Positions 2,630 to 21,532 of a DNA stretch of 64,000 nt are shown here, in pieces. The notes under the pieces are model-generated. The model did no database searches. It was not told where the DNA came from and worked only from the letters and a program-made list of their open reading frames with translations. The translations under genes were made by a program, and so were the position numbers. Source of the stretch: Laetmonice hystrix (Eukaryota); assembly GCA_965235115.1 (NCBI GenBank), contig OZ249436.1:52328001-52392000 (forward strand), given 5' to 3'. Every line of letters starts with the position of its first letter. Positions within the stretch are counted from its first letter, which is position 1.

Positions 2630-4744
2630 ATGAACTGGGCCTTCCTCACTCTGGTGGTACACGCCATATTCACTCAACACACAGACGGTGCATTTCAAGG
2701 TAAGCTTTTCATTCATTCTGAGTTCTTTATCTTCTTGTTTGTGCTCTTGTTCTTCGTGTACGTGTTCCTCTTCTTCTTAAAATTGTTCCAGTTGGACAGC
2801 CAATGAAATTCATCGGGCGATGAATATCATTGGCGCTTCTGCAACTGGAATGATGAATTTCATTAAATTTCCCCAGTTCTGTGGGTAAACACTAATTGAT
2901 TTATGTAGTCTAAGAGCTAATCTAACTTAACAACCCAGATCTACATACGAAAAGAGACATCGATTTCGTTTATCTATATGTGCTTGACGTTTTTCGCTGT
3001 GAAACCCCCTCGGACTTTCCTTTTGTTTCGTTTGTATATTTTGTTATTTTATTTTATATATTTTTAATGCTCACAATGTTGCACCACACAGCGAGTTGTG
3101 TTGTACAGTCGTATGTATCCGTTGGCCTACCTGAACGTCTCTTACTGCTGCTCTGTTAAAGCCTATCAGCCCAATGATGAGGGTCGGGTGAGTGTGGGCG
3201 AGTTCCGACCGGAACCTACCGTCGTCTCCAAGGAGTACCAGGCCAGGCATGAACAGTCGACGGATGTCGAGGCTAAGGAAGGTGGTTATGGTTACGGTCT
3301 CAACGGCCACGGGCACGGATACGGAAACGGTGGACGTCATGGAAACGGGAACCGGTACGGGAAGGGCGGCGACGGTGGCCACTTCGGCGGGGTACATGGC
3401 GGAAACTCTCTCGGCAAGGGATTTGGTGGTGATTCCATCAGCAAGAATACTGGCAATGTGTATGTTGGGTACAGCAGTCAATATGGGAGTGGAAGTTACG
3501 GTGGGAATGGACAGATTAGTCACTCGGCCAACAAGGGTCATGAATACAGTGAATACAACACCGACTTTGGAGGTGGTACGTACGGTGTGAGTGGACACGG
3601 AGGTGCTACGTACGGTGTGAGTGGACACGGAGGTGCTACGTACGGTGGGAGTGGACACGGAGGTACTACATACGGTGGGAGTGGACACGGAGGTGGTACG
3701 TCCGGTGTGAGTGGACACGGAGGTGCTACGTACGGTGGGAGTGGACACGGAGGTGCTACGTACGGTGGGAGTAGACACGGAGGTGCTACGTACGGTGGGA
3801 GTGGACACGGAGGTGCTACGTACGGTGGGAGTGCACACGGAGGTGGTACGTACGGTGGGAGTGCACACGGAGGTGCTACGTACGGTGGGAGTGGACACGG
3901 AGGTGGTACCTACGGTGGGAGTGGACACGGTGTGAGTGGACACGGAGGTGCTACGTACGGTGGGAGTGGACACGGAGGTGCTACGTACGGTGGGAGTGGA
4001 CGCGGAGGTGCTACGTACGGTGGGAGTGGACACGGAGGTGGTACGTACGGTGTGAGTGGACACGGAGGCGGCGGAAGTAAAGGAACCTCTACAGGAGGTG
4101 ACCGAGGAGGGAGTCACGCAGGGGGCGGTGGTCATGCTGGCCGCTATGATGGAAGTGGATATGGTAAGGGTGGACACTCAGAACGGGGTGGGCAGGGTGG
4201 TCACCTAGGGAGTGGTCACCTAGGAGGGGATGGACAGGGTGGGCACTCAGGAGGGGATACAGTGGGGACAGGCGCCTTTGTTAAAGGTTATAACTATCGG
4301 GGTTTCTCGACAGGGTCGGGTTATGGTAAAAACGACGGCGGTGCAGTCGGCGGCCATGGAGGTGCGGGTGGATACGAAGGGCGTAGCACACAAGACGGCG
4401 GGCTCATGTGGCTCGGTGGCTCCCATACCCAAGGGAAGGGCGATCATTCGGGCAAAGGCCAGTCGTCCCACGCCTGGAACGGCAAGACCAAACAGGAGTA
4501 CCAAAAGGGGGCTTCAGACACCTACAGCCATGATGGCACGAAAACGAAAAAATACAACTATGGCGGATCTGGCTGGTATAAGGAGACGAGCAAGGGAGAG
4601 GTGACGGGATTAGGGAGCGCTGGAGGCCAAGGCGCATCTAAGTTTGGTGGAGAAAAACATGGCTCCCACAAACGGGTCTTAGATATTAATCACGGCAGCA
4701 AGGACCAAACTGGAGGCCACAAGCATTACTACGGCTACAGTTAA
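2630..4744 (+). CDS. Secreted Gly/His/Tyr-rich structural protein, paralog 1 (550 aa)
   Basis: join(2630..2699,3162..4744). Exon 1 MNWAFLTLVVHAIFTQHTDGAFQ is signal-peptide-like; donor AG|GTAAGC; phase-1 acceptor ttaaag|cc; GGATYGGSGH repeats; 111-aa conserved C-terminal domain; AATAAA at 4831-4836. Confidence 0.85.
3569..4063 (+). repeat. Coding 30-bp tandem repeat (GGATYGGSGH, 16 units plus one half unit)
   Basis: Unit ggaggtgctacgtacggtgggagtggacac repeated in frame within paralog 1 exon 2. Confidence 0.95.
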
Positions 4745-4938: not shown

Positions 4939-5202
4939 TGTTCTGTCCCCGACTGCACAGAAAGTATAACCCAACAACAAGCCTCCATTCCAATTGACTT
5001 CTTGGTTTATTAGATGTTTGTCGTGTAGAGGTAAAAAGACTGTACGCGAACCCTAGAGCCGCTTCTCGCCAACTCTCGCTTATTCTCCGAGATTAAAACA
5101 CCGCCATCTAGTGGCCAAAGTCAGAACCCTCAAAAACCAAATCTTCCCCTCCGCCAGAGGGCGCTAAACTAAACTTAAATATATACTAGTACTACCAGCA
5201 CA
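4939..5202 (-). repeat. 3' LTR of the BEL/Pao element
   Basis: Direct repeat of 11586-11849; abuts the polypurine tract. Confidence 0.97.
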
Positions 5203-5446
5203 CTCCCCGTCTGATATCATCACGATATCACCACATATAAAGGAAAATAATAATATGTTACCATGTTCATACAGTAAATATCCTTGTGAATCGTTCTGAC
5301 TGGAACAACAACCAAATTCTCACCTGAGCTCAAGTTACTGATACATCTGTTGATAACTTACAAGCAATAGAGACCAACCTTAATGTTAGACGTTTTGTGT
5401 TTTAAACGAACACTGCTTTTACATGGGTCTGATACAAATGATTAAT

Positions 5447-8400
5447 TTACTCCACCAGTAACACCAAATCTGTAATGGGGCGGGTGTATGTTCGCATTTC
5501 CCCATCTTTCATGATTTTGACACACGCTTTACGCACCTCACCATCGTCACTGGGTAAAGTGTTCACAACAACCGCGAGTGGCCACCAATTTCTAGGAACC
5601 GCATCGTCCTTCATGAGAACAACATCACCTTCTTTGAGGTTTTTTGAGAGTTTTAACCACTTTCGGCGCACTTGGAGTCCCTGCAGGTATCCGACCCGCC
5701 ACTTAGCCCAAAACATGTCCGACAGGACTTGAACACGTTTCCACTGTGCCCGATACATGTCTTTTAGATCATATGAGTCACACATTGGAGGCATAAAATC
5801 GACTTTGCCAGTTAAGAGCATTGATGGGCTTATAACCATGGCTGACCCAGGGTCAGACGAGATCTGACCAAGCGGTCTTGAGTTAATGATGGCAGATACT
5901 TCCGCCATGAATGTTGTCAGACTTTCGTGAGTCAAGAGTTGGTTTCCTGACTCCAGAATGAGCGAGTTTAATATCCGGCGAGTCACACCGATGAGGCGTT
6001 CCCACACTCCTCCCATGTGGGAGCAGTGAGGAGCATTAAAGATCCATTTTGTTCCTAAATCAGTGAGGAAACGTTTGACTGGTGGATCCTCAACATTAAC
6101 AGTGTCAATCTTTAACTCCTCTGCAGCCCCAACAAAGTTTGTGCCCCGATCTGACCGAAACAGTTTTACAGGGCCTCTGAGAGCGAGAAAACGCCTGAGT
6201 GCATTTATGAAGGAGGAGCTACTTAGGTCCTCCACGACCTCTATGTGTACACCCCTTGTTGTCAAGCAGGTGAACAAGATCGCCCACCTCTTACTCTGGG
6301 CGACGCCACCTCGTGTGCGGCGAGTTACAATCTCCCATGGGCCGAATGTATCGACCCCCACGGATGTGAATGGTGGTCCAGGGCTAAGCCTGTCTGTCGG
6401 AAGATCCGCCATTTTTTGATGCAGTGGTTTTCCCCTCAGTCTGCGGCACACAACACAATTTTGGATGAGTGACGTTATCATACGTCTCACACCCACAATC
6501 CAATATCCATTGCCGCGGACCGATCCTTCCGTGAAATGTCTTCCCTGATGTTTCACCAAGCTATGACAATGGCTGATGATGAGACGAGACACATGATGGC
6601 CTTTTGGTAGGATGATCGGGTTAACTTCCTTCGTGGGTTGGGAACCTTTGAGCTTGTTCAATCTCCCCCCGACCCTCAGTAATCCGTTTTCGTCTACAAA
6701 CGGATCCAGTGTCCGGAGCGAACTGTTACGTGGCAGGTCTCTCCCCGCCATGAGGCACTGGACCTCTACCCTGAAAGCATCCCTCTGCACTTCCTTCAGG
6801 ATAAGGATTTCCACATCACACTGCAACTCCTGGCTGGTCATTTTCGAACAGTCGCGCCATCCCCGTGAGGCACATGATTTTGCGGCATGAGACTGTGCAA
6901 CATGTTTTAGAACCGAGAGTGCCCTCACGGCCGCTGTCCAGGTTGAAAACCTCTGAAATCGTTGACTCCCGAGACTGACCCGAGTCTCAGATTTTTTCAC
7001 TTCCACGTGGGGGCGAATTTCCTTGTCGTCATCAGGGTTGAGCAAGGGATAGTTTCCTGGGAAACAGGCATCCTGGGTGGCCTCCTTTCCATGCTGCTTG
7101 GATCCATGCAACCATACTTCCAATTGCTCCAATGTTGAGGTCAAGCATCTCGTACCACAATCGGCTGGGTTGCGGCTGGTTGGCACAAAAAACCATTGTT
7201 CAGGAGAGGCAACCCTTACAATGCGGTCCACGCGGTTACTGACATAGGTATAAAACCGTCGGGTTCTGTTGTTGATATATCCTAAGACGACCTTACTGTC
7301 TGTGTGGTACTTCACGGCAGTGAAGTGTACATCTAGTTGATCCTGTACAGTTTCTGCGATCTCTGTCGCAAGGACTGCCCCACACAATTCCAGGCGAGGA
7401 ATCGTGTGACCTCGTTTGGGAGCTAGCTTTGCTTTTCCCATGATGAATCCCATTTTCTGTTCACCCCTGGTGTCCGTCATTCTGATATATGCCACTGCTG
7501 CTATGGCCTTTTCGGAAGCATCCGAAAACACTAAGAGTTCTATTTGTTGTGCTGTATCAAGTGATTCTGACACGTACATCCTCGGAATCGCAAGTTCCTG
7601 AAGATTTTTCAGCGACGCTTTCCACTCTTCCCATTTCGCTTGACAGGCTGCTGGAAGAGGTTCATCCCAATTTGTGCCCGGAGGCGACGCCTCCCTGAGA
7701 ATGATTTTTCCCTGGATGGTGATTGGAGCAATAAATCCCAGAGGATCGAATACACTGTTTATGGCAGATAGAATTCCACGTCGGGTACACGGCTTGACGT
7801 CTGGCTCATTCTCAAATATGAAGCAGTCAGAATTCAGGTCCCATGACAGACCAAGGCTGTGTTGCAATGGTAAATGCTCTTCACCTATGTTGACGCGTTT
7901 TAGGTCCTTCCCTAGATCCTCTGCTGGGAAAGCTTTCATGACCTGTGAGTCGTTGGATACAATTTTGTGCAACCTGATGTCACCTGATGATGCCAGGGCA
8001 TGCTGAGTGCGCTTCATCAAATCAATGGCTTCCTCACGTGTTGGAAGAGAGACCAGACCGTCATCTACGTAAAAGTTTTTGCTGACCAGCTTTCGTACTT
8101 CATCATCACAAGCTGCTACTGCTCGGCGCAGCCCATAAGTTGCAACTGCCGGCGATGGGCTATTTCCAAAAACATGCACACACATCCGATACTCTGTTAG
8201 AGGCCTATCGGGATCGTTGTTTTGATACCAAAAGAACCTGAGGTAGTCTCTGTGGGCCTCATGGACTCGGAATCGGTAGAACATTTGTTCTATGTCGGCT
8301 GTAACAGCCACGCTATTCTTCCGGAAACGCAGCATTATTCCCGTCAGATTGTTTGTGAGATCAGGCCCACTCATCAGCAAGCTATTGAGGGACACACCCT

Positions 8401-11400
8401 TCGTTGTCGCTGACGAGTCAAATACACCCCTAATCTGATCCGGTTTTCGTGGGTGATATACACCAAAGAGAGGGAGATACCAGCACAGGCCATCAGGGGG
8501 CGTGGATGCTGGCTCAGCTGCACCGCTGTCGATCACCCTACTCATGAATGCGACGAAATGTTCCCTTTTAACCTTGTTTTGCCGCAGGCTGGCATCCAAG
8601 AGTTTAGCCCGCTTCCATGCTTCAGCTTTGTTGTCTGGTAACAACTGTCTAGGCTTTCTGAGGGGTAATGGAGCTGTCCAACGACCTTTTTCATCAATTT
8701 TGAACTCCATGTCCATCAGCTCAACAAATTTCCTGTCCTCCTGAGACAATCCAACTTTCTCATCATCCTTTGTTTTTTGAAATACTGTGTCATCATCATC
8801 TTCTCTTAATGCTTGGGTGTAGATTTTAGACTCTACCTGTTCCTTTAGACTCAGACTTTTCATGCACGGTTCGAAAATAGTCTCACGATTTTCTCCCAAG
8901 ACATGTGTCTTGTTCACACTAATTGAGCTGGGACAGTGAACTTTTCCCAGGCACACTTCCCCGATAATGACCCAGCCTAAGCTCAATCTCTGTGCGAATG
9001 GCATGTTGCTGGGACCGAGTATTTGTTCATGGACATGATGTACATCAGGAATGTCTCTCCCGATTAAGAGCTCGATGTCCACCTTTGGAGCGAGTTTAGG
9101 AATATGTCCGACAAGCCGCTGTAGATGAGAGTAGTGTTCCGCTATTTCTGGAGTTGGTATCTCCGACCTATCATTGGGAATGTGGTCACATTCGATCACA
9201 ACTGGCAAGTTGATGCAAGTATTGTCATGCAGTGATCCCACAGATATCCCTTTCGCACGTCTCGCTGATGCTGTGGTGCTTCCAGCGCAGGTTGATAAGG
9301 TATACTGCACCGGCTCCGTCTGTACATTGAGTTTATCAATCAACTGAGGTGAAGCAAGCGTTCGGTTGCTTTGATCATCTAAGATGGCATACACCTTGAT
9401 TGCCTCCTGTGGCTTCCCTGTAGGGTAGACATTTACCAACACTGTTTTACCACATGACCGTCCCCCAAAGCCATCTCCACACAGTGTCACACAGTTCGAC
9501 GCTAATGTTTCATTTGGAATTTGAGGTTTATCACTATCTCCCCGTTGACTGTGTTTTTCCTCCTGACCTGGACCTGGACCTGGTTTTCCAGCGTGCATGA
9601 CAGATGCGTGACGTGTGCTGCCACAATGTTTACACTTAATGTCCACTGGGCACCTCCGCGCCATGTGTTTAGACGATACACAGCATTTGAAGCAAATGTT
9701 ATTGTCTTTCAGGATTTTGCGGCGCTCTTCTAATGACTTAGCTTCAAACGCTCTACACTCACTCAAGGCATGGTTGGATTTGTGGATGGGGCACTTGTCA
9801 CTTGCTGAACTTGCTCCTGTCTCCTCAGTTTCTGTCTTTCGGCTTACGAACGTAGTTGTCCTGGTTGTGCCCTTTGATGCATTGTTTTTATTTACAGGTG
9901 CTGTGTCATACGCGAAAGCAGGATCATTTTTAACAGCACTGATTTCCCGGATGTAGTCAACAAAGAAGGAGAAAGGAGGAAATGGTACCTTGTAATAGCG
10001 CTTGTAATTGAAGGCCGTCGATGTCCATTTTTCCTGCAACCCATATGGCAACTTGTTTACCACCGATAATATGCCTGGTGATGTATCAAACTGTGCGAGC
10101 GGAGCACCATACTGGGGGTCCTCTTTGACCGACTCGATCACCGTGAGAATGTCCAGTAAATCATACAGTTTCAGAGAATCACGATTTGTAAGTTTTGGGA
10201 AACTGTCAAGTTTTGCTGTGAGTGAGGCTAGGACCATCTCAGGTCGACCATACCGTTCATTCAGTCTTTCCCAGATCAGGAAAACACCCCTGTGAGGATT
10301 GTTCATGTTTGAAGCCTTGATGCTTTGGGCAAACCGAGATGATTCAACCCCTAACCATTTTACTAACAAGTCTATCTCTTCACTGACAGTGACATTCAGC
10401 TCTTTCACCACACTACTGAAGCTATACTTCCATGCTGAGAATGACTCGGGACAGTCATCAAATTTTGTGAGCCTGGTTAAGAGTAACTCCTTTTTGAGTA
10501 AGAACTGGGTAAAAACTGATGGGTCTTGGTATACTTGCCCTACATTTTGAGTCTCAAGTTTGAAGGTTGGTGCATTTGGGTTGAGAGTATTTTCAGCTGC
10601 AGGTGTAGCCCTACTTGTGATTTTTCCTTCAAACTTCATGCCCTGGAGATTCGCCTTATGATCCCCCAAAGCTGGTCGATGTCCCTGTCCAACGGGCGGT
10701 TGTGATTGTGGGTTGGGTTGTGGGTCCAACCCTCCTGTGGTGGAGTATGCAAGGAGGTCACTAGGTGCGACAGATGCTGCACTGGCCTGTTGAATGTGAC
10801 TGTGAGAGTCCATAGCTGCTTGCTGTTGAATGCGACTGTGAGAGTCCATAGCTCCTTGCTGTTGAATGCGACTGTGAGAGTCCATAGCTCCTTGCTGTTG
10901 AATGCGACTGTGAGAGTCCATAGCTCCTTGCTGTTGAATGCGACTGTGAGAGTCCATAGCTCCTTGCTGTTGAATGCGACTGTGAGAGTCCATAGCTCCT
11001 TGCTGTTGAATGTTACTGTTAGAGTTCATAGCTGCTTGCTGTTGAACGTAACTCTGTGTTAATTCCAATTTGTTGGCTTGTACAGACGTTTGTTCCAGTA
11101 CAGGAGGAGGAGAACTGGTTACTGAACGTGGACAGCTTAATTCCTCCAGTACTCGTACCTCTGCCTCTGCTGCAGCTAACTCTGTCTGATGTTTTAGTAG
11201 TAATATCTCAGCGTCAATTTCTGCCCCTTGCCTGTCCTTCTCAGCCTTTTGTTTTAGCAGGCCTGCTTGTTTTTCACAGAACCGAAGCCGCGCACGTTCT
11301 GCTTCTACCTTAGCACGTTTGCAAGCTAGAACCATACTACTTGCCTTCGAGCTGGTGATCGACAGTTTGGAGCAGTTTGACTTGGTTTCCTCGGCGTCTA

Positions 11401-11479
11401 GGCTTAAACCACGTCCCTTTCCCGTGTTGACGCACGTGTTGTCAGTCTCGGGGGCCGAGACAGCAGCGTGGTCCGCCAT
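5447..11479 (-). CDS. BEL/Pao Gag-Pol polyprotein (2010 aa)
   Basis: Three Cys/His knuckles (CPIHKSNHALSEC, CFKCCVSSKHMARRC, CKHCGSTRHASVMH); protease AILDDQSNRT; RT ADIEQMF and FYVDDGL; Pao-type RNase H VFSDASE, IPRLELC, NPADCGTR; integrase HHCC finger plus VDTFGP/SDRGTNF/GVWERL; C-terminal WPLAVV region. Confidence 0.97.
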   Translation of the reverse strand: MADHAAVSAPETDNTCVNTGKGRGLSLDAEETKSNCSKLSITSSKASSMVLACKRAKVEAERARLRFCEKQAGLLKQKAEKDRQGAEIDAEILLLKHQTELAAAEAEVRVLEELSCPRSVTSSPPPVLEQTSVQANKLELTQSYVQQQAAMNSNSNIQQQGAMDSHSRIQQQGAMDSHSRIQQQGAMDSHSRIQQQGAMDSHSRIQQQGAMDSHSRIQQQAAMDSHSHIQQASAASVAPSDLLAYSTTGGLDPQPNPQSQPPVGQGHRPALGDHKANLQGMKFEGKITSRATPAAENTLNPNAPTFKLETQNVGQVYQDPSVFTQFLLKKELLLTRLTKFDDCPESFSAWKYSFSSVVKELNVTVSEEIDLLVKWLGVESSRFAQSIKASNMNNPHRGVFLIWERLNERYGRPEMVLASLTAKLDSFPKLTNRDSLKLYDLLDILTVIESVKEDPQYGAPLAQFDTSPGILSVVNKLPYGLQEKWTSTAFNYKRYYKVPFPPFSFFVDYIREISAVKNDPAFAYDTAPVNKNNASKGTTRTTTFVSRKTETEETGASSASDKCPIHKSNHALSECRAFEAKSLEERRKILKDNNICFKCCVSSKHMARRCPVDIKCKHCGSTRHASVMHAGKPGPGPGQEEKHSQRGDSDKPQIPNETLASNCVTLCGDGFGGRSCGKTVLVNVYPTGKPQEAIKVYAILDDQSNRTLASPQLIDKLNVQTEPVQYTLSTCAGSTTASARRAKGISVGSLHDNTCINLPVVIECDHIPNDRSEIPTPEIAEHYSHLQRLVGHIPKLAPKVDIELLIGRDIPDVHHVHEQILGPSNMPFAQRLSLGWVIIGEVCLGKVHCPSSISVNKTHVLGENRETIFEPCMKSLSLKEQVESKIYTQALREDDDDTVFQKTKDDEKVGLSQEDRKFVELMDMEFKIDEKGRWTAPLPLRKPRQLLPDNKAEAWKRAKLLDASLRQNKVKREHFVAFMSRVIDSGAAEPASTPPDGLCWYLPLFGVYHPRKPDQIRGVFDSSATTKGVSLNSLLMSGPDLTNNLTGIMLRFRKNSVAVTADIEQMFYRFRVHEAHRDYLRFFWYQNNDPDRPLTEYRMCVHVFGNSPSPAVATYGLRRAVAACDDEVRKLVSKNFYVDDGLVSLPTREEAIDLMKRTQHALASSGDIRLHKIVSNDSQVMKAFPAEDLGKDLKRVNIGEEHLPLQHSLGLSWDLNSDCFIFENEPDVKPCTRRGILSAINSVFDPLGFIAPITIQGKIILREASPPGTNWDEPLPAACQAKWEEWKASLKNLQELAIPRMYVSESLDTAQQIELLVFSDASEKAIAAVAYIRMTDTRGEQKMGFIMGKAKLAPKRGHTIPRLELCGAVLATEIAETVQDQLDVHFTAVKYHTDSKVVLGYINNRTRRFYTYVSNRVDRIVRVASPEQWFFVPTSRNPADCGTRCLTSTLEQLEVWLHGSKQHGKEATQDACFPGNYPLLNPDDDKEIRPHVEVKKSETRVSLGSQRFQRFSTWTAAVRALSVLKHVAQSHAAKSCASRGWRDCSKMTSQELQCDVEILILKEVQRDAFRVEVQCLMAGRDLPRNSSLRTLDPFVDENGLLRVGGRLNKLKGSQPTKEVNPIILPKGHHVSRLIISHCHSLVKHQGRHFTEGSVRGNGYWIVGVRRMITSLIQNCVVCRRLRGKPLHQKMADLPTDRLSPGPPFTSVGVDTFGPWEIVTRRTRGGVAQSKRWAILFTCLTTRGVHIEVVEDLSSSSFINALRRFLALRGPVKLFRSDRGTNFVGAAEELKIDTVNVEDPPVKRFLTDLGTKWIFNAPHCSHMGGVWERLIGVTRRILNSLILESGNQLLTHESLTTFMAEVSAIINSRPLGQISSDPGSAMVISPSMLLTGKVDFMPPMCDSYDLKDMYRAQWKRVQVLSDMFWAKWRVGYLQGLQVRRKWLKLSKNLKEGDVVLMKDDAVPRNWWPLAVVVNTLPSDDGEVRKACVKIMKDGEMRTYTRPITDLVLLVE
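10788..11047 (-). repeat. Coding 36-bp tandem repeat in gag (QQQGAMDSHSRI, ~7 units)
   Basis: Seen directly in the DNA and in the ORF translation. Confidence 0.95.
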
Positions 11480-11574
11480 TGTGGTTTTCTCGACGTCTAG
11501 CTTTTTAAACCATGTCCCTTTTCCGTGTTGACGCCCGTGTTGTCAGTCTCGGGCTGAGACAGCAGCGTGTTCGT

Positions 11575-11585
11575 AGTCTTTTTAC
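11575..11585 (-). other. Non-tRNA primer-binding site GTAAAAAGACT (element sense) abutting the 5' LTR
   Basis: Lacks the TGG start of a tRNA PBS; exact reverse complement of LTR positions 11678-11688. Confidence 0.75.
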
Positions 11586-11849
11586 TGTTCTGTCCCCGAC
11601 TGCACAGAAAGTATAACCCAACAACAAGCCTCCATTCCAATTGACTTCTTGGTTTATTAGATGTTTGTCGTGTAGAGGTAAAAAGACTGTACGCGAACCC
11701 TAGAGCCGCTTCTCGCCAACTCTCGCTTATTCTCCGAGATTAAAACACCGCCATCTAGTGGCCAAAGTCAGAACCCTCAAAAACCAAATCTTCCCCTCCG
11801 CCAGAGGGCGCTAAACTAAACTTAAATATATACTAGTACTACCAGCACA
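11586..11849 (-). repeat. 5' LTR of the BEL/Pao element
   Basis: Direct repeat of 4939-5202; AATAAA in element sense at 11658-11653. Confidence 0.97.
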
Positions 11850-12035: not shown

Positions 12036-12660
12036 CAGACGTCGAGCTCTCACAGGGTATGGCTGATGAACTAAACGCTCATGAATTACAGATCGTCAGG
12101 GTGTTCTTGTTTGATTCAAAGGAGAAATGTACAACAAATGATTATTAAAACAATGAATATGAAATGTGAATGGACGTCTGTATTATTGCCTTTGTTTTAC
12201 CCCACACCTGCATTCTATAACAATAGGGCCTATAATTTATATATGTCATTGACACGACACGTCACCATCACACAGACGGAAAGATACTACACTAAATGCA
12301 GCTTTGTCCTGTAACTGTTATCATTTTTGAACGCGGTTAACTTGATACAATGTAACTCGGCCATCTTCCTCCAGTCATTTATCACTGAACACCAGTGTCT
12401 TGAACATTGCATGTAAAATCCTGCTTGGGTCAGTTCCATTGCCTTCAGCGTTTTAAGGCACAGGCTTGTCGAAAATCACGTTAGAACCACCGCAAGGCCT
12501 CCATGTATACTCACCTTTCACAGTAGTGGTTCGAAATAAATGCCCCCCCCCCTCCAAGAAGTCATATGTCGAACATGACATCTGTGTCAATATCACGGGC
12601 TTCAGCAGCGCCGCCATTCATTAATGTTCCGGTCTATATCTATTTGCGCATTGATACGCA
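12036..12660 (+). repeat. Segmental duplicate copy B (of 1-645)
   Basis: Roughly 98% identical to the window start by eye over ~570 bp; lacks the ETS/CRE/NRF1 block of copy A. Confidence 0.93.
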
Positions 12661-14641: not shown

Positions 14642-16054
14642 ATGAAGCCGCATCCATTTCTACTGCTCGCGCTGGTGACATTCACCATAGGCGAACCTAT
14701 AGGTACATAATTCCTTTTTCCGTCACGCCATATTCACATGCAATCGTCACTTTTGGGGGAGCTGGGGCAATTTAGGAACTGAACTATAAGCTTTAATGTA
14801 CGTGAAATCGTCAAAATCCCACATGGTTAAATTGAATTTTATATTTTTGTACTGATGGGCATCTACATGGAGCGATTAATTAATCTTGCCATATTCAAAA
14901 GCGGCTACCTATACACCATGAGCAAACACCATCCACCTCTCTCAGAAACGCTTTCATGCAGTGTTGGATCCCCGCCTGGATGAAGGTGACTTGTCTAACT
15001 AGACCTCACTGCCTTGAATCGTTGTACAAACCTTAGAAACATCATCCTATGTTATCTTATTGTTACAGTGAATAACCGCGTAGACGCTGGAGGGGATGTA
15101 GCGAAGGAGGTGGAGGGCAAGAGTGGTTACGGCGGACACTATGGCGGGTACGGCCTTGGCCACGGACATGGTGGTCACTATGGCGGACACGGTGGTCACT
15201 ACGGCGGACATGGTGGTCTCTACGGCGGACACGGTGGTCACTACGGCGGACACGGTGGTCACTACGGCGGACATGGTGGTCTCTACGGCGGACATGGGGG
15301 TCACTACGGCGGACACGGTGGTCACTACGGCGGGCATGGTGGTCACTACGGCGGACACGGTGGTCACTACGGCGGACACGGTGGTCACTACGGCGGACAT
15401 GGTGGTCACTATGGCGGACATGGTGTAGGTCACGGCGGAGGGTATGGACACTATGGGCATGGCCACGGTCACGGCGGTCATGGTTACGGAAATGGTCACT
15501 ACGGTGTCGGCCATGGTGGTTACGGTTACGGACACGGTCACGGTAGTCTACACCATGGAAGTGGACATCATCACGGCGGTGGCGGCTACGATTACGGAAA
15601 CAATCAGGCTCACCACGGGGGTCACAAAGACAGCTACCACCACGACAACCATAAGGTTGGATCACATGGAGGTCATGGTTCACATCAAGGAGGTAGCAAA
15701 CATGACGGAGGGGACCAGTGGTACGGGGGAAGTCACAGTAAGGGACATGGCGGCGAGTCCGGCCATGGTCACGCCGACCAAACCTGGAACGGGAAGAGCC
15801 AAGAAGGGTATCACAAGGGGGAAGAAGACAAGTACAGCCACTATGGGACGAAGACGAAAAATTACCATTATGGAGGAGCCGGCTGGTACAAGGAGAACAG
15901 TCAAGGTCATGTAACCGGCCAGGGTCACGCGGGCAAGCACGGTACCGGACATTTCGGTGGGCACAAACACGCCAATAAATACGAGCAGGCCAACAATCAT
16001 TACGGCAACCAACAGAAGGCAAGCGGTCACAAACAGTACTACGGCTACAACTAA
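14642..16054 (+). CDS. Secreted Gly/His/Tyr-rich structural protein, paralog 2 (348 aa)
   Basis: join(14642..14702,15069..16054). Signal-like MKPHPFLLLALVTFTIGEPI; donor AG|GTACAT; phase-1 acceptor gttacag|tg; GGHYGGH repeats; 111-aa C-terminal domain; AATAAA at 16106-16111. Confidence 0.87.
15170..15421 (+). repeat. Coding 21-bp tandem repeat (GG[H/L]YGGH x12)
   Basis: Twelve in-frame units; Leu variants at units 3 and 6 suggest a 63-bp higher-order duplication. Confidence 0.95.
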
Positions 16055-18991: not shown

Positions 18992-21532
18992 ATGAAACCA
19001 ACTAGTCTGATCGTGTTGGCTCTGGTCGTATTAACCCAGGATGTCTTCAGTCGAGAGCTTATTCGAGGTAAGTCCAATGGGCCGGTTGATTGTAAATGCT
19101 GTCATATATCATAGTTGAATGATTCTTTTTTTTGAAATATGAAAAAGATTCCACGGTCTAATTCAAGTAAATATGGTAGGTCTATACAAAGGACGGTGGG
19201 TAAATTACTTTGAGACGTTTGTTCATTATCTGCAGTAAACGGGTTGGTCTCTCCAAACGTGTATTTAAAAAAGTTCAGAAAACGAAAAAAAAGTTTGATT
19301 ATTTGTCACGTAGAAAATATAGATAGCTTTTGCCTGGGTTAGTGAAAAAAAGGTTTCTTTATTGAAACCATAGCCTCCGCCCGTATCCAATGGTCCAGCC
19401 CTTATATTTATTAGTCAATACATGAAATATTTGGCTCGATTTTACAAATTGAAATGGGCAAATCAGCAACGTTTCTTTCCGTTCGTTAACACTGACCAGA
19501 TACAGCAGGAAGACAACATACCAAATGGGATTTATCCGCACTCCAGAATATTTCTAATTGACAAAAAGGGGCACGTTTTGTATCTAACGCCACCTAATCA
19601 CATCGGGGTAGGGGGTGCCNNNNNNNNNNNNNNNNNNNNNNNNNNNNNNNNNNNNNNNNNNNNNNNNNNNNNNNNNNNNNNNNNNNNNNNNNNNNNNNNN
19701 NNNNNNNNNNNNNNNNNNNNNNNNNNNNNNNNNNNNNNNNNNNNNNNNNNNNNCTGTTGTCTCCTGGACCACTTTGGAACCTTATCGTTGAATGAGCAAG
19801 TGTTAGCTGTCCCATACTGCGTCTGCAATCTGCAAGGCGAACACCAGAGTACCGCAAAACAGACAAAGGGGCCCATTGTCCCCGGATCCCCTCGAGAAGT
19901 GAATACTTGGGAGCTGAGTCCACTGATCCCAGAACCTCTCTATTATCATCTTATACTTGGGAGCTGAGTCCACTGATCCCAGAACCTCTCTATTATCATC
20001 TTATACTTGGGAGCTGAGTCCACTGATCCCAGAACCTCTCTATTATCATCTTATACTTGGGAGCTGAGTCCACTGATCCCAGAACCTCTCTATTATCTTA
20101 TACTTGGAAGCTGAGTCCACTGATCCCAGAACCTCTCTATTATCATCTTATACTTGGGAGCTGAGTCCACTGATCCCAGAACCTCTCTATTATCATCTTA
20201 TACTTGGGAGCTGAGTCCACTGATCCCAGAACCTCTCTATTATCATCTTATACTTGGGAGCTGAGTCCACTGATCCCAGAACCTCTCTGTTATCCGCTTC
20301 ATGTTTTATATGTAAATGTTTGTCACTTACTTGCTGCAAGGTCGATGGTTTCCTCGGGTACTCGGGTTCCGCCAACTGTCAAACTGACCGCCTTGATATA
20401 TCACTGTCTGTTACGAAGGCATAACGGTATCTCCGATCCCAATTCTGATTCCAATCACACGAAATCGATCTATATGATCTAACCGGGATGAGCTGGAGTT
20501 GAGGGATAATCTGTAATTGATTGATGACCCATATAACAAAGGTCTTTGCAAGTTTCATCAGTGGTTTATGTCAGTGGTTAGGGAGGCAGTGGGGGTTAAT
20601 AGGTCTGATTACGCAAATGGCCTCAAACTTTTGGATCATTTACAAATAATTATTCCAAGTCTGTTTGGCTGGTCCATCACAGGCAGCTCAAGCTTCAGTA
20701 ATCTTGAACTTAACTTTTTAACATTGTGTAGAGGGCTCGCAAAACCAGCCCCTCATTTAATTTAGAAGCAGTTTAGAGGGGTGCACGGGTAGGCTCCCTC
20801 CCTCCCTGCCTCGCTCCCTCGCTCCCTCCCTCCCTCCCTCCCTCCCTCCCTGTTGCGACGGACTCATGTCAGTGACACTGAGCCTACTTCACGTCTTCAG
20901 AGTCTGAGTGTGCATTTCAACCACCTCTCTAACCGAAACATCGAAATCGTAGGATATGCTTACCTGTCTAGGATCCATCAGAGAACAAGCACCTCACATT
21001 GTGCAGAATTCCTTTAACGGCTGGTGCCCACTCTAGCATTATCGGTTTCCTTCCACTCCCAAGACTTTCAAACTTTGGAATCGTAACGATTCATGCAACC
21101 TCTCGAATTCTGGTGGACGTTATCGTGAGCCGTGGCCACAAAGGTTGGCGCCTGAATTATTCTATCCAAGCGCGTTGAAGGCGTCACCTAGTGGAATTAC
21201 TAGAAGGCATGTACTCCGTGCTGACAACTTGGCGTACAGGTGGCGCCACCGTCTATTATCGCTAGTTGTATTGAATATGCTAAAAGCTAGAATGTCTTAT
21301 CGGCTTCACTTAGTTTCATGTGACATCGCTTGCAGCATCTGGATATTATGTCTGTTTGAACTTAAGGGTTAAAGGGGTAATTTTACTTGATAATTCACAG
21401 TGGTCATCAATGGGCACATCAGCAGCCAGACCGCAACTGGCATAGGCTACTACTAAGACGCCATCTGTCGATACAACTTCCCCACTGACTTAGGAGTCTC
21501 CCCCTGTCTCTCTGTCTCTGTCTGTCTGTCTA

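Follow-up and report, generated by a model that had tools for sequence, protein, structure and literature searches.

Self-priming of reverse transcription, in which an LTR retrotransposon uses a piece of its own RNA in place of a host tRNA, has been demonstrated only in Tf1. In this element the bases immediately following the 5' LTR are complementary to the start of R, and a cut by RNase H at the end of the resulting duplex generates the primer. On the basis of sequence the same mechanism has been inferred for the Tf1/sushi chromoviruses, and LTR-to-leader complementarity has led to its prediction in the Tcn1 (Ty3/gypsy) and TAR (Ty1/copia; Houba, Osr-1) lineages of plants (PMC6317226), indicating that it recurs in separate families of LTR elements. 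A different departure from the standard tRNA site is the copia-type priming by half-tRNAs, with 1/2 tRNA-Met and 1/2 tRNA-Ile in plants (PMC6317226), where the site likewise does not begin with TGG, but is probably constant across families and matches a host tRNA. In contrast, the BEL/Pao elements (Belpaoviridae) are described in the ICTV profile as possessing an 18-nt primer-binding site for tRNA-Arg or tRNA-Gly and as being primed by a host tRNA (PMC8742986), and Achilles of Bactrocera oleae is reported with an 18-nt tRNA-Tyr site (PMC4580426). The two main surveys of BEL/Pao elements do not mention primer sites at all, and no report of self-priming or of an LTR intron in this family was recovered in the literature searched, although prior description in subscription journals or Repbase notes cannot be excluded.

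A BEL/Pao element without a tRNA-type site in Laetmonice hystrix

The window analysed here is a stretch of 64,000 nucleotides from Laetmonice hystrix (GCA_965235115.1, contig OZ249436.1, positions 52,328,001 to 52,392,000), and all coordinates below refer to it unless otherwise stated. It contains a full-length LTR retrotransposon of 6911 bp on the minus strand (4939-11849), bounded by two identical LTRs of 264 nt (5' LTR at 11849-11586 and 3' LTR at 5202-4939), which begin with TGT and end with ACA, and flanked by a 5-bp target-site duplication, TCGAT, at 11854-11850 and 4938-4934. A polypurine tract, AGACGGGGAG (5212-5203), abuts the 3' LTR, and (A/G)GACGGGGAG-like tracts occur in relatives. 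A single uninterrupted gag-pol frame of 2010 aa (5447-11479) recovered hits to PF05380 (Pao retrotransposon peptidase, E = 7e-48) and PF18701 (E = 1e-22), as well as to RVT_1 and Integrase_H2C2, and the best database relatives all carry PF05380, establishing it as a BEL/Pao element rather than a Ty3/gypsy chromovirus of the Tf1/sushi group. The gene order, TG..CA termini, 5-bp duplication and purine tract are those of canonical BEL/Pao elements, and as the 18-nt tRNA site of the ICTV profile is a descriptive feature rather than a part of the phylogenetic definition, its absence does not affect family membership. The 627-Mb genome contains about seven full copies at 96-100% identity, indicating that the family is young. 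The N-terminal (Gag) part of the frame contains a 36-nt tandem repeat (10751-11092; 7 or more copies, 91-98% alike) specifying a 12-aa repeat, while the leader and the start of the frame contain a direct duplication with a 97-nt period (11383-11572; 86% alike), which begins right after the primer-binding site, spans the ATG at 11479 and is present in all genomic copies. Outside the element, a 571-nt host segment is repeated at 97.5% identity on both sides of it (1-571 and 12036-12600, 12,035 bp apart), and host tandem repeats with periods of 30/15, 21 and 50 nt lie at 3479-4153, 15100-15519 and 19823-20366, respectively.

In the sense of the element the 5' LTR ends in GGGGACAGAACA and is immediately followed by GTAAAAAGACT (11585-11575), which lacks the TGG of a tRNA-type site. 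Its exact reverse complement, AGTCTTTTTAC, lies within the LTR at 11688-11678, 103 nt before the LTR end, with a further copy in the 3' LTR (5031-5041). The flanking bases do not pair on either side (C opposite A on both), and the first A of the complement precedes the AATAAA polyadenylation signal (11658-11653; copy at 5006-5011) by 30 nt. These observations confirm those made in the first-pass annotation. The 11-mer occurs in the window only at the three expected places, i.e. the two LTR copies and the site after the LTR, against a shuffled expectation of 0.07. Moreover, when 4000 other positions of the same element were treated as mock sites the longest complement in the LTR was 8 nt. All genomic copies retain both 11-mers, and the one variant seen next to the site, in one of the 96-97% identical copies, falls just outside the duplex; this is consistent with constraint, though copies of a single family provide no covariation.

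Folding of the RNA from 11688 to 11575 predicts a structure closed by the 11-bp duplex (-29.7 kcal/mol, z = -2.09), and the same closure appears in most relatives. A hairpin (UUCUGU...ACAGAA, 11609-11588), which ends 2 nt before the LTR end, is also predicted next to the site, and comparable hairpins with altered arm sequences (GCUGU..ACAGC, AUUCUGAU..GUCAGAAU) occur in about nine relatives. These predicted hairpins are reminiscent of the U5-IR stem required by Tf1 and retroviruses, but the resemblance is only tentative. In the relatives from Eleginops and Ixodes, a short segment of R just after the primer sequence can instead pair locally; in Ixodes, CACCG...CGGTG forms a hairpin that includes the primer, which could represent an alternative conformation competing with the primer duplex.

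Covariation and a predicted LTR intron in related elements

A protein search of the genome with the RT-RNase H region recovered many BEL/Pao families at 38-67% identity, while the closest database relatives (50-60% identity) are found in bivalves, gastropods, ticks, fish and Priapulus. In addition to the window element, 23 elements (those given numbers between L053 and L076 are working labels for these relatives) were examined, of which 12 are from this genome, seven are from named genomes (Pinctada, Pecten, Littorina, Ixodes, Ornithodoros and two fish), and four are from unnamed assemblies. The last were obtained in a search for transcript-derived contigs with a spliced 5' end among Logan and JGI contigs, which proved to be circularly collapsed or genomic and yielded no RNA ends. 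All have near-identical LTR pairs or collapsed LTRs. None of the 24 elements has a TGG-type site after the LTR, and each pairs its own post-LTR bases with its own LTR, 50-320 nt from the LTR end. In eleven of them the bases after the LTR are the exact complement of a contiguous LTR segment of 9-13 nt, lying 75-320 nt before the LTR end, with one of the eleven having a 3-nt spacer first. The sites differ by family: GTGAAAAAACAC in L053, GTAAAAAACC in L063, GTGAAAAACT in L064, GTCAACTCTG in L059, GTAATAACT in L054, GTACAAATCTAA in L057, GTAAAAGACGGTG in Ixodes and GTGAAAAAACG in Ornithodoros. In most relatives an AATAAA or ATTAAA lies between the complement and the LTR end, as expected if the complement marks the start of R. 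The element from Littorina saxatilis is given little weight because its 13-nt match is part of a near-perfect palindrome of about 150 bp per arm covering all of R-U5 and running straight into the post-LTR site (L069, the fetched sequence of this element, 1878-2372); it fits a fold-back primer but might be a rearrangement, and its 5' LTR is about 60 nt longer than its 3' LTR.

The other 13 elements showed only 5-8 contiguous complementary bases, but in every one of them a pyrimidine tract plus YAG stood directly before the complement. A search of the upstream LTR for the reverse complement of the next bases of the post-LTR site located it in each case directly in front of a 5' splice site, indicating that the primer sequence is split by a predicted GT..AG intron of 177-569 nt and that the match of 10-15 nt exists only after splicing. 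The donors, with intron lengths and spliced duplexes, are ACAGT/gtgagt in Pinctada (301 nt, 13 bp), AACAGT/gtgagt in L062 (257 nt, 13 bp), CCAGTGAA/gtgagt in L055 (235 nt, 15 bp), AAGAT/gtaagt in L056 (210 nt, 12 bp), GTTATA/gtaagt in L058 (333 nt, 11 bp), TGCTT/gtaagt in Pygocentrus (177 nt, 11 bp), TGTCT/gtaagt in Eleginops (232 nt, 11 bp), GGT/gtaagt in Pecten (418 nt, 11 bp), AGT/gtaagt in L074 (443 nt, 11 bp), AGC/gtaagt in L075 (443 nt, 11 bp), AGT/gtaagt in L076 (366 nt, 11 bp), TAAAT/gtgcta in L072 (210 nt, 13 bp) and CAGAG/gtatta in L060 (569 nt, 10 bp). Thus, the donor conforms to GT(A/G)AGT in 11 of 13, and in three of these LTRs the matching donor is the only GT(A/G)AG site upstream of the acceptor. 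Even if any GT is allowed to serve as a donor, the summed log10 P for the first eleven is -15.5. One family provides a natural control: L059 and L060 have near-identical proteins, and the 342-nt LTR of L059 equals the 911-nt LTR of L060 with exactly the 569-nt GT..AG segment removed, which leaves CAGAGTTGAC contiguous. The genome holds at least five intron-bearing and two separate intron-less loci of this LTR, and such precise loss of a GT..AG segment between sibling retroelements is what splicing followed by reverse transcription produces.

After conceptual splicing all 24 elements possess an exact complement of their own site of 9-15 nt (median 11) in their own LTR, whereas pairing the site of one element with the LTR of another gives a median of 4. 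Among 22 non-redundant elements positions 1-9 of the duplex are Watson-Crick in 22 of 22, with two to four different pair types at each of positions 3-9; position 10 pairs in 21 and position 11 in 18 (plus one G-U), while positions 12-15 fall to 9, 7, 3 and 4, which is about chance. The first 6-7 bases of the site (GTAAAA or GTGAAAA) are, however, widely conserved, and part of the match in close relatives is therefore shared ancestry rather than independent covariation. The duplex has a defined length of about 11 bp, comparable to what is probably 11 nt in Tf1, and ends at the U5 edge, or 3-4 nt from it in two related families. Because the match crosses a predicted splice junction in 13 elements, it would have to act in RNA, and an inverted duplication at the DNA level cannot explain it.

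On the Pol tree the window element is nested among intron-bearing relatives (Pinctada, Pecten, L072, L074 and L062; supports 94-99), and intron presence requires at least seven changes on this tree. The position homologous to the intron of the relatives lies between 11686 and 11685, and the contiguous string ACAGTCTTTTTAC at 11690-11678 equals the spliced junction of the Pinctada element, which reads ACAGT+CTTTTTAC. Hence, the window element is best read as a derivative that has lost this intron.

Inferred mechanism of priming and its alternatives

Given the above, the element is best explained as a recently inserted BEL/Pao retrotransposon that primes minus-strand synthesis with its own RNA, a reading to which we assign a probability of roughly 0.8 and which rests on comparative sequence evidence without RNA or cDNA data. 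In the proposed mechanism an 11-nt stretch near the 5' end of the transcript (AGUCUUUUUAC, LTR 11688-11678), at the presumed start of R, folds back onto the 11 nt just after U5 (11585-11575). A cut at the 3' end of this duplex, as described for Tf1, would place the new 3'-OH exactly opposite the first base after the LTR, from where reverse transcriptase would extend it through U5 and R. Copying of the attached primer during plus-strand synthesis would re-template the site in every cycle and thereby keep the two sequences matched. The cut, the priming in cis, the position of the transcript start and the splicing in the relatives are inferences. The first-pass annotation, which proposed Tf1-style self-priming, is thus supported in its core, and the element passes a test that it had named as a possible refutation, in that related elements do show covarying complementarity. 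However, three of its points need amendment. First, it placed the transcript start at the A of CAGT (11688); CAGTCT (11689-11684) fits an initiator-like pattern, but in the relatives this point is a predicted exon-exon junction, so the start might be either there, making exon 1 a 3-8 nt micro-exon in the relatives, or further upstream, and no consistent TATA box was found upstream of the primer sequence across elements. If the transcript starts well upstream of the duplex, the primer would carry a 5' tail, and it is then unclear how plus-strand strong-stop DNA would end cleanly. Second, the feature is not peculiar to this element but is a property of a broad BEL/Pao group spanning several phyla, though not universal in the family, given the tRNA sites reported for Achilles and in the ICTV profile. 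Third, the independent origin relative to Tf1 that it proposed is no more than plausible. Relative to Tf1, the element belongs to a different family, the spacer is 0 nt in most elements but 3-4 nt in two families, and the intron splitting the primer sequence in 13 relatives has not been seen reported for Tf1/sushi elements, nor is it described for the plant lineages.

Alternatively, the LTR-to-leader duplex might be a structural element of the genomic RNA, serving circularization of the leader, packaging, dimerization or translation control, with the true primer being something else. Conserved long-range pairings that are not primers are likely to be present in retroviral and Ty leaders, and the fold z-score of -2.09 is modest. 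However, this possibility is considered unlikely because the duplex ends exactly at the first base after the LTR in 22 of 24 elements, and 3-4 nt after it in the other two; the U5 edge is where the primer 3' end defines it, and a purely structural stem has no reason to keep that register. Furthermore, no alternative TGG site exists in any of the 24 leaders. A second, somewhat less favored possibility is that the primer is supplied in trans by another element RNA, such as a short spliced LTR transcript ending at the LTR polyadenylation signal or the co-packaged partner RNA. The persistence of intron-bearing LTRs in many lineages is easier to explain if the copied genomic RNA can remain unspliced while a spliced RNA provides the primer, and the AATAAA close behind the primer sequence makes short LTR RNAs conceivable. 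Against this, the fold-back closes the minimum-energy structure in the window element, and the model for Tf1 appears to be intramolecular, but there are no data to decide either way.

Priming by a host tRNA fragment or another small RNA ending in UUUUUAC-3', comparable to the use of a tRNA-iMet half by copia, with the LTR match being coincidental or mimicry, is very unlikely. Although the GTAAAA or GTGAAAA start of the site is conserved across phyla, sites differ strongly among families within one genome (e.g. GTCAACTCTG, GTTCTATATCTT and GTACAAATTCACTGG) and each is matched by its own LTR, in 13 cases only across a predicted splice junction. A full-length tRNA is excluded by the lack of TGG. 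The 11-mer is not enriched in the genome (362 hits against 607-719 for the control), no Rfam family and no tRNA gene lies in or near the element, and the anticodon arm of the host tRNA-Lys(UUU) reads CAGACTTTTAATCTG and does not match. As an Rfam tRNA search of the genome scored only 63 of about 32,000 candidates and ARAGORN on the 30 loci returned gave just Arg, Lys and Thr genes, a tRNA-fragment primer is excluded by the covariation rather than by an exhaustive search. Large tandem arrays of tRNA-Lys(CTT), tRNA-Lys(TTT) and tRNA-Arg(TCG) genes, spaced every 2-8 kb, were noted at G000:C1:71.03-71.23 Mb and C7:27.26-27.46 Mb (working labels for a genome and its contigs). Finally, a chance inverted repeat, though favored by the A-richness of the site, is refuted by the mock-site control and by the recurrence of the same geometry in 23 other elements.

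Implications for BEL/Pao replication

It is more likely than not, though by no means certain, that a large, multi-phylum group of BEL/Pao retrotransposons replicates by self-priming with a primer assembled by splicing. In this reading a spliceosomal intron inside the LTR splits the primer sequence, so that only RNA spliced at the 5' LTR can pair with the site after U5, while retention or removal of the intron in the 3' LTR copy would decide whether the progeny keep it. If the 3' copy is also spliced, the progeny become permanently intron-less, as in L059 compared with L060 and as in the window element. This would couple host splicing to the start of reverse transcription and contradict the textbook statement that Belpaoviridae are tRNA-primed.

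Showing the geometry of Tf1 in BEL/Pao would mean that all three large families of LTR retrotransposons contain members that do without a host tRNA, and the current ICTV description of the family would need correcting. It would also explain why tRNA-based annotation tools find no primer site in these elements, and would provide a simple sequence rule for annotating them, namely that the post-LTR bases are the reverse complement of the R start, optionally across an LTR intron. The intron-split primer predicted in the relatives, which is undescribed as far as could be found, would offer a natural system in which splicing decides whether an RNA can be reverse transcribed, and it would explain the scattered presence and absence of LTR introns through a retro-processing ratchet.
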